Assembly: GCA_965644265.1 (NCBI GenBank)
Contig: OZ286461.1
Coordinates: 43,214,001 to 43,278,000, forward strand
Length of the DNA: 64,000 bases
Direction of reading: 5' to 3'
DNA from: Glycera tridactyla
Taxonomy: Eukaryota
In this document: positions 1,812-40,200 of the stretch, one piece after another
How positions within the stretch are numbered: position 1 is the first letter of the stretch
Layout of the letters: every line of letters begins with the position of its first letter
The notes under the pieces: generated by a model
Databases searched by the model: none
The model's input: only the letters and a program-made list of their open reading frames with translations
What the model was told of the DNA's origin: nothing
Made by a program: the position numbers and the translations under genes

Positions 1812-4800
1812 TAATCCCTCACTCACTCAATCAATCATTCAATCAACTTACCCCACTGCCCATCAAAGAAGATCTCAATGCGTCCTGAGAGTTTGTCGCC
1901 GCCAGCCAGGCGTATATCTCCATTCTCTGCCCTCATAGTGGGGTCTGAGCACTCCACTCCTACATCCTCCTCGTGTATACAGTTATGTGAACCCCATTCC
2001 GGGTGTGAACAGTTAGAGATGGGTACAGTATAGTAAGGACACTCCATATCATCCAGCCAGATCGGCCCTGTGGGTGTGAGGACACTATTAGCTGAATCAT
2101 GCGATGTTGTGGGATCAAGTAGTGTGGGGAAAAACAAATGAGTATTCACACAGAATTGCCCATTTGAGAGAGATTCTGTGTGGATATCTGCAGGAGACAT
2201 GGTAGAATAAGAGAAACACTGATTCAAACATGTTTGTGAAGTTTGTTCAAATGTTGAGAGGTATGAGGCAATTTCACGGTGCCTAGTAGGTGCAAGTTCA
2301 TCTCCGCTGTGATTTGGCCATGTTCACATCTGCAATACAAACTACGAATACTAAAAGTCCAGTATGATGAGACCCCTATGAAATTTGATTTTTCTTCTCA
2401 TTGCGCGAGATTGTGTATCAATGGAGAAAGATATATCGGAGTAAACTAATGTTTTGAAGATGTGTTTTTCTGAGACAAATCATGGTTGAAATGATTTGAA
2501 ATATGACTGTGAATTCTAACCTGTACCGCCGCCATATTCTTCAATCACGCTGACGTCATAATAGCCAAGCCCCATCTGTCGGCAGACTGACTGTGCTGCT
2601 GCCTGGTTGAATAGATCGTCACACACCGTGCCTGAAACAAACACCTCTTGTATTTCTTCCTCTTTTCTCCCATGGTACAATGAAGCTATCACATGTTTCC
2701 ATGACAAATATCGAGTTCATCAATGGAAAGTCGGATGACCATATGAATTACTATTTTTTTTGGATGATTTATTATGTCTGTGGGTTTTTAGGTAATGAAT
2801 TGATTGGGCCATGATGTTACTTCGACCTATGCTGGAAATATCCCATCAGCCAGGACATGGACAACATTCCATTGACTCAACAGGCTAGGGGCCAGCTTAT
2901 TGCTGTATGACTCGCGCGAAGCGATTGCTCGTTGATGATATTAGACTGAATTCAATGAAAGTCCTTTTCGACACCCCACAAGAGTAGTCAGTGAGTTGAT
3001 ATTTGAGCTTGAATCCTGGAATGATCATGGGATGATCATACCCTTGAGATGCTGTAGTAGGTGAATTGAACAACTCACCCCATTCGCCATTATGGTAGAT
3101 CTCCACCCTTCCTCGTAGATAGGAGCCGACAAGACGGACCTGCCCCTCAGATCCAGGGTCTGGGTCGTTTTCTGAGCAGCTAATACCCACGTCCTCATTG
3201 TGGCCACAGTTATGAGAACCCCATCCACGGTGGGTACAATCGCTTACCTGTGGAATATAATGCACTGATATAACCTCCATTATCTGTCTCTGGTACAATC
3301 CTAAGATTCCATTGACTTTTCCTAGGTGCTCCAGACTTCAGCCTTTTCGACTCTCATGATGCACAACGCCCAGAACACAGAGTCTGTATAATCACTCACT
3401 ATAAGTCTCAGGGTGGTCAATTAGGGCATATGAGATAAGATAAGATGAGTTTATCGCATAGGGTATAGATGTCACAAGAGACCAAAGCTGGTCATGGTAC
3501 ATGCTTATGCAAATAAAAGTAAAAGGATATGGAAATCACAACACAAGAGAAAAAATTATTCACCGTATGTTCTAGAGATATATACTTAAAGTATACATAC
3601 GGTAGTAAGGAGGCACAATCAACAGTAGTTATAGTAGGCTGTACATATCAGTTGCTTGTAATTGGTTGGCAGACTAGTCATGTAGAATATGTTGTAATAA
3701 GACAACAACAAATGAAAGTATGCAGCCAAACCATATACGCAGACCAGCCTTGATTGCATCAAAAAGTGGTCTTGGTAGAGAGACGGCCTTTGTGGACGTC
3801 ATTCATGGTGGACACTAGTATCATTCTATAGGGGTGGTCTCTCTCGAGCAGGTATATGATATGCTCAGTTCTGTTAGCAGTGTTCCCTGATATGGCCGAG
3901 GGCAAGTACGCTTGTGTGTGTGTATGCATGTGTGCGTGGAGAAGCTGCACTGGTGATGCCTCTGTAATTGACAGGATACATACGGTTCGTGCATCTTCCG
4001 GGCAGTCCAGATCGTCGAGCCAGATTGGCCCCTCACCTGGCTCCACCTCGTGGACGACTGATGCGAATGATCCGAGCCCCATCTGCCGGCAGGAAAACGC
4101 AGCCTCCTCCTCACCAAAGTTATCGTCACAAATCGTACCTGTAACGTCAAGACTGCAGACTTTAAGATCGACTGACATGTGTTGCATAAATTATTCACAT
4201 CCCAATTGTTTTTTTGCAGAGGATGTTACCCTGAAATGTGATGATTGCAGACTGTCTATGTGACAAAAAAAAATGTGCGGAAACAGCAGAAGCCATTCAC
4301 TGATTCTCTCATGTGACAATCATCTAGTAAGCAATTCACAAATAGACCAATGTCGAGTTTGACAATTTCGTACTGTGGCTGTTCATCAGTTTGGGATGAC
4401 GTCAGGTTCGGATAACCCCTACAAAATTCCAATCATATTTGAACCATATATACGATAATTGATCTATCATGTAGGTCCGTCTTGAATGCTCATTAGTAAG
4501 TACATGTATTCATTTCAACACTCGACTTGTGCCATACAGACACGCAGTAATGGTTTTGCTTCTACATAAAGGTCACTACCTATTCGGGAGAGGAAACAAT
4601 GTTTTTTTATAATAGCACTGGGCCATTACTTTTCTGGAGCAAAGCAAAGCATTTCTTTGCACTGGAATCAGCGATTCTATGCTCACTGAACAATGGTGAG
4701 CTTCGGAGTGACTATATCGGGTACAGATTGAATTTAAGAGAGAATTTATACCAGGTCAATGCAGCCCAGGACCACCAGCTTGATATGAATGGTTTAATGA

Positions 4801-37200: not shown

Positions 37201-40200
37201 TCGTGGCAAATCTCCAGTCTCCCTTCATTTGACTTCTCCCCTACAATTCTGATGGCACCCTCGACGTCGCAGGCCAGGTCCGCATCGTTGTAGCAGGCGA
37301 CGGCAACGTCTGATGAGTGTTCACAATTGTGGTCACCCCAGCCTTGGAAACTGCACATACGAACAATCAACAACAGCAAAATACAGTCTACATATATTAT
37401 CACATGGATATGCCATTTTCAGTGAAGTATCAGGTGTTGAGTATTGCGTGTGATACTTCACAGCTGAGTGAGAACTATCTTCTTAAGATTTCTTCCCTAA
37501 TCCATGTGATAAAAGCAAGACTATATGACCGTGAGGTAAAAACACAATACCAAACTCGGTGTAGATTTCTCCAGATGTCACGAGTCCGAAGGCGAAGGTG
37601 AAATTCACACCTTTTTTGGTATCGCGATTTTACTTCACGGCCATATAGTCTTGCTATATTCCAGGCCAGGCACGCCACCAAAGCGGCGAGGACGCCAAGG
37701 ACGACGGCCTCGTGAACGGACGGGTAAACAGACACACGGAGAAATGGGTATACAGAATGGTGATCGGATAGATGGAAGTACGAGAAATCCACTGATACCA
37801 ATGGTAAGAATGGTGAAGACAATTACGACGATGGTCACCACCAAAGTGTTCGCATCGCCACCAGAAAGTAGGGATGACAAAATGACGGCGAAACTGACGA
37901 TGCCGGCGTCATCATCGGTCATGATATATCGATGATCATTGACGTGGCATTAGCTCATAAGGGGATGGTAATATGTATTACAGACTTAGTCTGATTGATG
38001 AGTGAGTGAAGCTTAACGTCCCCTCAACTCAGGCGCATTATTGTGAGTCCAACAATTATGATGATTATGGCATTCCCGCGGGGGGGGGGGGGGGGGCTTC
38101 GAAGTGTGGATTCTGCTTTTCCTGTACATATGGCATTCCCGGGAATTATCATCAGTTCATTAGTAGGCATTTATGACTAGGTGTGTTTTGTGAGCGTGTT
38201 CAACCTACATACATTGCGCTCAGAGACCTTGTTTGCTTTGTATCACTTTTTGTTCAATTGTGTCACTTTGAAGGTCCTGCCCCCACTCTAAAATGTCACC
38301 TCGAGTGTCAGTAACTTCCATATCATTCACCCCCCCCCCCCCCATTTAGAAGGGCTGCGACTGGGTTCACTAGGAAGTGTGATGACATTGTACTATAATT
38401 TATAAGCATGGGGCACACATAAAAGTCAGCTGGTCTAACGTTGACAGGTCATAATCGAACACATCGGTTCGGCATTCTCATGTCCCTCCTGTCCCAACTA
38501 CTGCTATTTTCCCAAAAAGAAAACATTGCTATCAAGCTTGTGTATCACCTTCCAGCCATTTACATATTTAGGTGTGTCATCCTTGAATTCATTATTTTCA
38601 TTTATGATAGGTCCCACTTGTCAACCTTTTAGGTTTCCCATCATTTTGTGTTCAGGGCTTGTGGGAGTTATGTCTGCAGGGGTGAGGACTTTCATCTTTC
38701 ATTGAACAGGAACACATGGCATACATAATCCTGTGAGTCGATACATGCCGGAAAACCCAAACAAACATACAAATTAGAGACCCAGGTTGAGGAATAATCA
38801 ATTATCCCACCACAGGTGGAGTGGGCATCACGATATAGCACGTATGGGGCTGACGTGCCTATGAAGAACAACCAATAAATGCGCTTCAATCGATGATATG
38901 GCAAATACGATATGATTTGACAAGTAGACTTTGTTTTCTGACCTGCAGTCGGTGACCGATGCCTCGCTTCCGTCACACCAGACGTCATCCATCCATATTG
39001 GGCCCGTCTCCCCGGTGATTCCCTCCAGGCGTACGCCACTGTCGAAGCCCAGGGAGCCGCAGATCACTGCCAGGTTTTCTTCCCGGATGTATGCGCCACA
39101 AATCGTGCCTGTCAACAGAGATAACATTCACCAGTTTTCCTTCACACAAAACAAACACCTTCGTTAGCCGATAACATCCAAGATGGCTGCCGCCTTATAA
39201 TCTGGGCCTCATTCCAAAGTCAAATTTCATGGCACGAGAAACGCAGATCATTCGATTCGAATGATGAACGTTGTCCATTTCGGTCAACCATCCGGGCAGG
39301 TGCCCTATTCATTGTGCTGAACCACGCTGCTCAATTGGGAATTAGAGGAAATGTTGACTACTTGTAGTACTACTCACCCCACCTGCTGTCATGGCACACC
39401 TGGACGATTCCATCCTCGGTCAATCTAGTGTTGCCTTCGGTCGAACAAACCACATCTTCCTCCGTCTTACAGATGACACTGACATCTTCAACGTGCTCAC
39501 AGTTGTTCACACCCCAACCATTGAAGGTACATTCAGTGAGTGAAGCTTCGTCTCCACTGCATTCGACGTTGTCCATGTGGATCGACCCAGTACCTGCGCC
39601 GTAGCGCTTGTGTGAATCGAGATGACCGGTGAAATATCCGAGCTGTTTACACGCCACTTCGGCATCCACGTCACTAAATTCATCTTCACAAATCGTACCT
39701 GGCAATGAAGACATTGATGATGATGGTCATGGTGGTAATTGTGGCGGTTTGTTTGTTTGTTTGTTCGTTTGGGTTCGACGTCCTTTCAACCACTTCGGGT
39801 TATATCGGACTGGAGAAATGTTGCCGGGGGAGTCTCTACTCTTTGAGAAGGACAGCAGTGGTTCTCCAATGTGCATACAGGAATAGCCTCCCGTACACAC
39901 GGCCGGCCTTTGATATCCCANNNNNNNNNNNNNNNNNNNNNNNNNNNNNNNNNNNNNNNNNNNNNNNNNNNNNNNNNNNNNNNNNNNNNNNNNNNNNNNN
40001 NNNNNNNNNNNNNNNNNNNNNNNNNNNNNNNNNNNNNNNNNNNNNNNNNNNNNNNNNNNNNNNNNNNNNNNNNNNNNNNNNNNNNNNNNNNNNNNNNNNN
40101 NNNNNNNNNNNNNNNNNNNNNNNNNNNNNNNNNNNNNNNNNNNNNNNNNNNNNNNNNNTCAAACCCTCATTCCCTATACCTACCCCACTTATTTTCATGG

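Follow-up and report, generated by a model that had tools for sequence, protein, structure and literature searches.

Two of the five additional introns that interrupt modules of an SRCR array (introns A to E, Table 1) are end-to-end copies of one interspersed transposon. We put at about 0.85 the probability that a non-autonomous MITE-like transposon of about 461 nt inserted independently in the middle of exons encoding SRCR modules, an origin that can be read directly in introns A and D, is probable for E and possible for C, intron B having arisen otherwise.

The SRCR array and its five additional introns

The window, i.e., the whole 64-kb stretch of DNA analysed, contains some 30 modules assigned to the group A SRCR type (six cysteines, intron-split) on the basis of Pfam SRCR matches and of the conserved cysteine pattern. 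Their canonical exon unit of about 330 nt reads "G/TVCDD...GRVEIxHxxEW-G/", the slashes here and below marking splice cuts, with a phase-1 intron within the Gly codon. A protein search with the array modules returned 6248 SRCR relatives; exons were used singly as queries rather than as a spliced protein, and the gene's own product was absent from this exhaustive search, the best matches being at most 58% identical (top match, 55%). The best SRCR protein match is a gastropod protein.

The five additional introns and their phases, as originally predicted, were recovered with exact boundaries on the minus strand, and the lengths of the split pairs, recomputed by hand, are all multiples of three (A, 111 + 216 = 327 nt; B, 155 + 169 = 324; C, 152 + 187 = 339; D, 164 + 211 = 375; E, 166 + 161 = 327). 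With separate translation, the two half exons of each pair match complementary portions of a 110-position HMM derived from 17 unsplit modules; they part at positions 36/37 (A), 44/45 (D), about 49/50 (C), about 51/52 (B) and 56 (E), so that no two introns share a site, again as predicted. Open frames and SRCR signatures are kept in all ten half exons, each of which matches PF00530 (seven at the curated cut-off or better) in a manner consistent with the HMM breaks. C is the sole intron of the five with an N gap inside it; its two half exons presumably belong together, judging from phase and from the complementary parts of the domain that they cover, and the gap could hide a further exon.

Four of the five introns (A, C, D, and E) begin with GTYAGAA, as had been noticed at the outset. 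The motif GGTYAGAA occurs just six times on the gene strand of the window, four of which are these donors. Among the 23 fully read donors of canonical W-G/ introns (GTGAGT, 8; GTAGGT, 5; GTATGT, 3; GTGAGA, 2; five singles), the +3 position is always a purine and never a pyrimidine; a 24th donor (exon 16402) reads GTGAGT and is followed by a gap.

Table 1. Features of the array, its additional introns and the elements within them (positions in the window)
Feature	Position	Strand	Description
SRCR array	1207..51311	-	about 30 group-A modules (one or two genes); tblastn map, flanks, Pfam PF00530
Extra intron A	2520..2068	-	453 nt, phase 1; ..GGTACAG/GTTAGAAT...CACCCACAG/GGCCG
Half exons of A	2521-2631 and 1852-2067	-	sum 327 nt; HMM 1-35 and 38-110
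MITE copy in intron A	2073..2521	-	model 1-460 of 461; nhmmer E 1.6e-69; 74% to consensus
Extra intron B	3983..3248	-	736 nt, phase 0; donor GTATGTAT, GTATGT type
Extra intron C	24917..21882	-	3036 nt (N gap 22596-22725 included), phase 0; donor GTTAGAAT, also given as GGTTAGAATCCC
Extra intron D	33515..33134	-	382 nt, phase 0; ..GGAGTACAG/GTTAGAAA...CTTGTAG/TGTGTC
Half exons of D	D1 33516-33679, D2 32923-33133	-	contiguous cover by transcript contigs
MITE copy in intron D	33139..33516	-	model 1-344, internal deletion, 3' terminal repeat; nhmmer E 1.1e-71; 79.5% to consensus
Extra intron E	38942..37351	-	1592 nt, phase 2; ..GACTGCAG/GTCAGAAAACA...GTATGTGCAG/TTTCC; donor GTCAGAAA
Nested younger repeat in intron E	37396..37658	-	different, very abundant hairpin element, about 265 nt

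A dispersed family of MITE-like elements

The element has a consensus of about 461 nt, about 1,000 genomic copies and imperfect terminal inverted repeats (GGTTAGAAACCACC... and ...GGTGTATTCATACC), one end being GGTTAGAAACCACCATTA and the other the reverse complement of GGTATGAATACACCATTAG. This structure explains the rare GTYAGAA donor, which is the terminal inverted repeat of the transposon; both ends start with GGT, and a donor is possible in principle in either orientation. The 5' terminal 23-mer matches the genome at 490 + 514 places with at most three mismatches, vs. 1 + 0 for a control. Intron D used as a genome query gave 871 first-look candidates; among the 40 non-self places that were scored, 39 reached E ≤ 1e-42 at 72–78% identity, most of them beginning within the first five bases of the intron. 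Every chromosome-scale contig that the pattern search listed carries dispersed copies. A family model (nhmmer) built from 18 full copies matches the copies in A and D alone within the window.

Insertion duplicates 4 bp of the target, usually TNNA, with a weak context C/TNNA/G, the slashes here marking the edges of the duplicated target (C at -5 in 25/49 copies; within the duplication, T at position 1 in 31/49 and A at position 4 in 33/49; a G directly following it in 9/28). Among 28 full copies the duplication is perfect in 9 and has at least three bases alike in 14, vs. 4.9 and 18%, respectively, in a control that permuted the partners of the first 18 copies. The family is classed as MITE-like for its short length, its terminal inverted repeats, a target duplication of fixed 4-bp length above control and about 1,004 copies of its end sequence. 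Target duplications of 4 bp fit several transposase superfamilies. In an RNA fold of intron D the terminal repeats pair, and the structure is not unusual (z 0.24).

The copies in A and D fill their introns, base 1 of the element being the last base of the exon and the element ending 5 nt before the acceptor cut. In A, where the first G of the copy is that last exon base, the target duplication reads TACA (2522-2525) and CACA (2069-2072); in D it reads TACA (33517-33520) and TGTA (33135-33138), the second copy bearing two changes, and the 3' end of the element, CTAATGGTGTATTTCTAC, is that of the family. A and D align with each other from the base preceding the donor to the acceptor region, are alike over essentially their whole length in spite of their different positions, and both fit the family model; a third copy, L077, lies in another gene, on another chromosome. 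Both are more decayed (74 and 79.5% to consensus) than the other copies (83–93%), a difference that would fit a graded series of ages running on to E and C.

These observations bear on two other accounts of the shared sequence and the scattered sites. It is exceedingly unlikely that reverse splicing or gene conversion, rather than transposition, carried an intron from one module to another: A and D do share a gene and an orientation, and both follow GTACAG, but the family is represented by some 1,000 dispersed copies with the same ends and 4-bp duplications, and A is no closer to D than either is to other family members. Very improbable, too, is the differential loss that the original prediction had named as a possible refutation, in which all five introns would be ancient and every other module would have lost them. 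The five sites do lie close together, within a stretch of about 22 codons at mid-module, and no positive support for such losses was found; none of the roughly 30 other modules of the window is interrupted at one of these sites, and for A and D this history is excluded, as each is a transposon copy flanked by a target duplication and the two lie at different positions. Independent transposon insertion is retained as the origin of these two introns.

Evidence on the splicing of the inserted copies

The transcript data cover one of the five introns, D. Two contigs (5626 and 6101 nt, at depths of 31 and 63), assembled from two runs that bear the label "RNA?" by guess and that differ by 1–3% from the assembly, join 33133 to 33516 and skip 382 nt, with CT..AC ends on the plus strand. 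Both cover 32922-33133, 33516-33677, and 34861-35193 without interruption, depth is zero inside intron D, and the canonical intron of 1183 nt upstream of D1 is likewise removed. The removal of intron D from transcripts is exact and leaves the frame intact. Exact matches in the window were found for the loose ends of the contigs at 32337-32366 and 37191-37220, which makes the exons that flank the gaps at 32427-32637 and 35393-35541 neighbours in the mRNA. Intron A is presumably spliced as well, judging from its open frame and the continuity of the domain.

The contigs show 3–9 differing positions per exon relative to the assembly and therefore come from other individuals. Precise splicing and an empty allele would yield the same mRNA, and one may thus imagine that the insertions go unspliced in the assembled animal, that the split modules are decaying pseudo-exons and that the RNA stems from empty alleles. 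We consider this quite unlikely, since the copy in D is old (79.5% to consensus, internally deleted, its second target copy decayed), far older than a polymorphism of 1–3%, and since the ten half exons have preserved their open frames and SRCR signatures and the donor, the acceptor and a branch-like CTAAT/CTGAT motif 20–35 nt upstream of the acceptor are all intact. No close paralogue bearing an empty site turned up in genome searches with exons D1 and A2, which returned only the exons themselves; a retrocopy of D1 is ruled out because this exon is single in the genome.

Proposed mechanism of intron gain

Since the element starts with GGT, the final base of the duplicated target is usually A and a native G often follows, an insertion reads ...TNNA-G/GTYAGAA......ACC-TNNA-G/.... 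Base 1 of the element becomes the last base of the exon and its bases 2 and 3 the GT of the donor, and the AG of the acceptor is made of the final A of the second target copy and the next native G. Splicing then restores exactly the coding sequence that preceded the insertion. The predicted empty sites read ...GGTACAGGGCCG... for A and ...GGAGTACAGTGTGTC... for D. In E and C, selection may have kept the first 8–12 bases, which form the donor, while the remainder decayed and filled with younger repeats.

Introns E, C, and B

The first 12 bases of E and C each agree with the element end at 10 positions, an agreement to which we assign by our own estimate a chance of about 1e-3 each, given a G/GT donor. 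Intron E is further flanked by a perfect TGCA on both sides (38944-38947 and 37352-37355), at the predicted offsets, and its next 60 nt have a weak likeness to the element (z 2.1–2.5) that exceeds that of all 21 canonical introns tested. The repeat nested in E is a family of its own, with 3947 first-look candidates at about 90% identity and self-inverted matches. In intron C other repeats are nested from about base 14, likeness to the element ends at about base 12, and the flanking 4-mers, ACAA and TGCA, are unlike each other. E is probably, and C possibly, an older copy of the element.

A less likely reading, but one to be taken seriously, confines the transposon origin to A and D and attributes the GTYAGAA of E and C to chance or to unrelated sequence. 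It is favoured by the absence of a family match to E or C in nhmmer searches even with filters off, by 5' 20-mers of both introns that are not repeated genome-wide above control, and by the features of C just described. It has to contend with the agreement at the element start in both introns, with the lack of a +3 pyrimidine in the fully read canonical donors (0/23), and with the target duplication and residual similarity of E. We keep E and C, at their different strengths, within the account of independent insertions.

Intron B is not derived from the element and originated in some other way: it resembles the family in neither orientation, and the only repetitive part of it is an internal stretch of about 100 nt. 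Of the two broader claims made at the outset, independent gain holds for A and D, as end-to-end transposon copies with target duplications at different module positions, and less firmly for B, C, and E. The idea that mostly one mechanism was at work has acquired a mechanism, the terminal inverted repeat of a transposon serving as donor, which is proven for two of the five introns, but it fails for B, where the donor is an ordinary GTATGT and the ends of the transposon are absent.

Other copies in the genome

The third copy mentioned above, L077, has the same layout as A and D, reading ...TGC TCT TCA G/GTTAGAAACCACC...(420 nt)...TCCAG/GT GAC GCC. Upstream of it lies an open frame of 200 aa with a somatomedin B domain (PF01033, E 5.6e-10), and downstream 54 further open codons lead to AAAG/GTAAGT; the open frame suggests that this copy is spliced out of an exon of a somatomedin-B gene. 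L077 is the one clearly exonic copy among 49 sampled elsewhere (one in 20 of the copies sampled by terminal repeat is exonic), too few to establish the family as a whole as specialised in intron making; A, D, and L077 make three copies shown or presumed to act as introns. In a test for open frames spanning the junction, applied to 29 other copies, controls also had long frames (33% with at least 90 nt on both sides). The only Pfam match among ten flank pieces of other copies was a Kringle exon next to the intronic copy L015. A lead is offered by L003, with an open frame of 154 aa across the excised junction, in antisense orientation and with neither Pfam nor Atlas support.

It is tempting, if rather doubtful, to see in this family a true animal Introner, whose GGT...ACC ends and C/TNNA/G preference would allow a large share of its insertions to be spliced whichever way they are oriented (donor GTTAGA or GTATGA) and which would have provided dozens of working introns in unrelated genes, in a lineage without described cases.

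Significance and comparison with known systems

Recent animal intron gains with a still-readable mechanism are scarce, and the SRCR locus displays each step in its sequence: the element ends, the target duplication, the borrowed acceptor, the exact restoration of the frame and, for one intron, removal from RNA. A rare donor motif is accounted for without unusual splicing, and the series of introns suggests how a transposon origin may fade with age while the terminal bases that form the donor persist.

In maize, Wessler and colleagues reportedly found in the 1980s–90s that Ds and dSpm insertions in exons are spliced out via sites at or near their ends. As in the SRCR array, an exonic DNA transposon is removed as an intron; however, removal in maize is mostly imprecise and leaky and concerns mutant alleles, whereas the exact frame is restored here and the insertions seem old and fixed. 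The introners of Micromonas pusilla were reportedly described as MITE-like by Huff et al. in 2016. According to the summary given in PMC11282704, these are likewise short non-autonomous DNA transposons with terminal inverted repeats and a short target duplication, one splice site coming from the element and the other lying in the duplicated target, so that the mRNA is unchanged. In the terms of that summary, they have a 3-nt duplication and account for thousands of genic introns in a green alga, in contrast with 4 bp, an animal host, about 1,000 copies and three introns, shown or inferred, in the present family. Introners of Chrysochromulina sp. share with it the 4-bp duplication, a 5' splice site in the element and a 3' site co-opted at insertion, but they have no terminal inverted repeats, whereas those of the present family are clear, though imperfect (Gozashti et al., 2022; PMC9860276).

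The SRCR case is an instance of introner-type intron gain, a process already known and reported to be rare in animals: among 3,325 genomes surveyed, introners were found in only two animal groups (PMC9860276). The tunicate Fritillaria borealis, as presented in the account of Henriet et al. (2019) cited in PMC11282704, also has animal introns derived from MITE insertions. On that account they have mostly non-canonical AG-AC or AG-AT ends and require an altered spliceosome, whereas the introns described here have canonical GT-AG ends, with only the pyrimidine at +3 being odd.

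The SRCR gene and its five extra introns

The array of SRCR modules mapped by tblastn (Pfam PF00530) has a gastropod SRCR protein as its closest protein relative, with up to 55% identity. Its usual coding unit is a single exon of ~330 nt extending from the 'G|TVCDD' of one domain to the 'GRVEIxHxxEW-G|' of the next, bordered by phase-1 introns within a Gly codon (TGG G|GTGAGT ... cag|GT ACG). An SRCR part at 13468-13692 (minus) lacks the start of a next domain (..VWVVCSYDSESFFMY, then a stop), and the following SRCR start is first met at 8313 (8221-8448, minus), past two gaps; thus the array possibly comprises two genes, in which case the transcript carrying introns A and B may differ from that of C, D, and E.

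Five units are each split by one additional intron, the exact boundaries of which were determined on the minus strand (see table). The half-exon sums are those originally claimed (A 327, B 324, C 339, D 375, and E 327 nt). When each half exon was translated on its own and scored against an HMM built from 17 unsplit units, the halves covered complementary parts of the module in 5/5 pairs, with concordant Pfam SRCR coordinates. The original observation that no two modules share a break position holds on the HMM positions, and all five breaks fall mid-unit, within ~22 codons. The donor that it called rare, shared by four of the five, is scarce within the window: of the six GGTYAGAA occurrences on the gene strand (64 kb), four are extra donors. 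Canonical donors differ from GTYAGAA, with A or G at +3 in all 23 that could be fully read (GTGAGT 8, GTAGGT 5, GTATGT 3, and others); a 24th is GTGAGT before a gap. In module D, a Ser/Glu-rich low-complexity insert (SSSESSSESQSSEEED; 33530-33610, minus) replaces the usual loop in the upstream half exon (D1, 33516-33679), and the module ends in ..HGALYW-G, four residues longer than usual.

The sole assembly gap inside an extra intron (22596-22725) lies in C, whose half exons are paired by phase and domain complementarity; going by the sequence, a hidden exon is possible there. Across the span of the extra introns, the other gaps interrupt canonical introns or lie clear of the split units. At 32337-32366 and 37191-37220 the window is identical to the loose ends of the transcript contigs, so the exons flanking gaps 32427-32637 and 35393-35541 are adjacent in the mRNA.

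Coordinates of the SRCR array, its extra introns, and related elements
Feature	Location	Strand	Details
SRCR module array	~51311 down to 1207	minus	~30 modules
Intron A	2520..2068	minus	phase 1; break at module positions 36/37; donor GTTAGAAT
Intron B	3983..3248	minus	break at module ~51|52; donor GTATGTAT
Intron C	24917..21882	minus	break at module ~49|50; donor GTTAGAAT
Intron D	33515..33134	minus	break at module 44|45; donor GTTAGAAA
Intron E	38942..37351	minus	phase 2; break at module 56; donor GTCAGAAA
~265-nt hairpin element copies	37396-37658 (nested in E), 46542-46808, 58900-59171, 59498-59781
Element copy splitting a somatomedin-B gene exon	L077:516-1701 (G000:C1:4280747-4282447)	minus	CAG|GTTAGAA...TCCAG|G layout
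Kringle-domain exon	L015:1778-2131	+	PF00051, E 5.3e-14

A transposon family behind introns A and D

Introns A and D are homologous from the base preceding the donor through the acceptor region. A search of the genome (2.04 Gb) with intron D gave 871 first-look candidates; among the 40 places scored besides its own, 39 matched at E 1e-42 or lower with 72-78% identity, most matches starting within its first five bases. Aligned copies define an element of ~461 nt that starts with GGTTAGAAACCACCATTATATTT and ends with GCTGATTGGTCTAATGGTGTATTCATACC, its ends forming an imperfect inverted repeat (GGTTAGAAACCACCATTA vs GGTATGAATACACCATTAG). The 5' terminal 23-mer has 1,004 genomic matches with at most three mismatches, against one for the reversed control. 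A 4-bp direct repeat borders the full copies; it is perfect in 9/28 and matches at three bases or more in 14/28 (permuted partners of the first 18 copies: 4.9 and 18%, respectively). The target consensus is ~C|TNNA|G, and G+C is 0.48 in the 100 nt around insertions vs 0.42 at a distance of 300-600 nt. The element is a MITE-like, non-autonomous DNA transposon. A family model built from 18 full copies matches the window in intron A (model positions 1-460, E 1.6e-69) and intron D (positions 1-344, an internal deletion, then the 3' end; E 1.1e-71), and nowhere else. Both are more decayed than other copies, with 74 and 79.5% identity to the consensus for A and D, respectively, compared to 83-93%. 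At 48872 (minus), GGGTCAGAAACACATGAC resembles the terminal repeat of the element in non-coding sequence beside gaps, and may be what is left of a further copy.

Splicing of intron D

Three small runs of one study, labeled 'RNA?' by guess, contain parts of the stretch. Contigs of 5626 and 6101 nt from two runs (depth 31 and 63) are uninterrupted over 32922-33133, 33516-33677, and 34861-35193, and both omit the 1183-nt canonical intron as well as 382 nt that are exactly intron D (CT..AC on the plus strand, i.e., GT..AG for the gene), inside which neither run has any read depth. The third run also spans the canonical junction. As two introns are absent at GT-AG boundaries, the contigs derive from RNA; a retrocopy as their source is excluded, exon D1 having no second copy in the genome search. 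RNA donors bearing an insertion-free allele would yield an identical mRNA, and the contigs, which differ from the assembly by 1-3%, do come from other individuals than the one assembled. However, the D copy, with its divergence from the consensus, its internal deletion, and two changes in the second target copy, is far older than the observed polymorphism, making such an empty allele unlikely and splicing of D the preferred reading.

How a copy would become an intron

With target copies in square brackets and the element in braces, insertion A reads GGCGG[TACA]{GGTTAGAAT...CTCACACC}[CACA]GGGCCG and insertion D reads TGGAG[TACA]{GGTTAGAAAC...ATTTCTACT}[TGTA]GTGTGTC. The first G of the element is the final exonic base ahead of the intron, and bases 2-3 of the element provide the donor GT; the acceptor AG combines the terminal A of the second target copy with the adjoining native G. 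Excision at G|GT...AG| thus swaps the native G for that of the element and restores the pre-insertion sequence exactly (A, GGC GGT ACA GGG CCG; D, GGA GTA CAG TGT GTC). Exonic CAG plus GTYAGA would match the usual donor consensus at 7/9 positions. CTGAT and CTAAT in the 3' repeat, 20-35 nt before the acceptor, resemble a branch site and may serve as one. Since both element ends start with GGT, the reverse orientation would offer a predicted donor GTATGA.

Introns E, C, and B

Introns E and C start with GGTCAGAAAACA and GGTTAGAATCCC, each with 10/12 matches to the first 12 bases of the element. Perfect TGCA copies flank E at exactly the offsets predicted by the model, and over its next 60 nt E resembles the family weakly (z 2.1-2.5), with a score that none of the 21 canonical introns tested reaches. 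Beyond approximately base 12, C has no similarity to the element; an unrelated hairpin repeat (copied at loci L063 and L064) begins there and carries a second GGTTAGAAAA by chance. Within that repeat, the second CAG|GTTAGAAAAC lies at 24861-24890 (minus), 28 nt past the donor of C and out of frame with the acceptor. Searching E and C with nhmmer gave no family match even with filters off, and across the genome the first 20 bases of each recur no more often than the control. Both introns are long and filled with younger repeats. One of these, nested in E, is a second element, a self-inverted hairpin of ~265 nt that is younger and much more abundant, with 3947 first-look candidates at ~90% identity. 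The simplest reading would be an age series from A and D to E and C, along which selection would hold only the donor-forming end of the element and the rest would decay; E is probably, and C possibly, an old copy.

The donor of intron B, GTATGT, is ordinary; the intron resembles the element in neither orientation, and no repeat extends to its ends. Both B and its downstream exon start with GTA (3981-3983 and 3245-3247, minus; ..AACC|GTATGT...CACAG|GTAAGC), a 3-nt repeat that could be the trace of another insertion, of break repair, or of chance. The original inference of independent gains, probably mostly by one mechanism, is supported; among the five introns that mechanism is identified for two (A and D), and it does not extend to B.

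Copies elsewhere in the genome

Among 20 further copies sampled by a perfect 5' end, one, on another chromosome-scale contig (locus L077), splits a coding exon, oriented as in A and D, and reads ...ATC ACC AGA TGC TCT TCA G|GTTAGAAACCACC...(420 nt)...GTATTCATCCC TCCAG|GT GAC GCC.... The open frame upstream of it spans 200 aa and contains a somatomedin B domain (PF01033, E 5.6e-10), and downstream are 54 open codons followed by a consensus donor (AAAG|GTAAGT). These open frames predict a third intron case, in another gene. The surrounding region (C1:4.17-4.28 Mb) also has repeated matches to a repeat from intron C. Another copy (locus L015) is intronic: a Kringle exon begins ~25 nt downstream, so this copy occupies the extreme end of its intron; a copy at locus L003 is an unconfirmed antisense candidate. 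Some 26 matches to a 20-mer pattern at G000:C29:29386349-29464807 are mostly ~2.17 kb apart, a spacing that indicates a long tandem array unrelated to the extra introns.

Relation to known Introners

The intron gain described here is of the Introner type. Introners of Micromonas are MITE-like, with terminal inverted repeats (TIRs) and a 3-nt target site duplication (TSD), and the element supplies one splice site while the duplicated target makes the other (PMC11282704). A class from Chrysochromulina carries the 5' splice site, co-opts the 3' one, and generates a 4-bp TSD (Gozashti et al., 2022, PMC9860276). In a survey of 3,325 genomes, Introners were reported from just two groups of animals (Gozashti et al., 2022, PMC9860276), and the introns of Fritillaria are MITE-derived but have non-canonical ends (PMC11282704). 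The present family shares with Introners the mechanism of intron gain and is a candidate member in the strict sense, which would mean many genic introns genome-wide. As an addition to the known cases, it is an animal example whose ends are canonical GT-AG, whose TIRs are clear, and whose target preference prepares both splice sites in advance.
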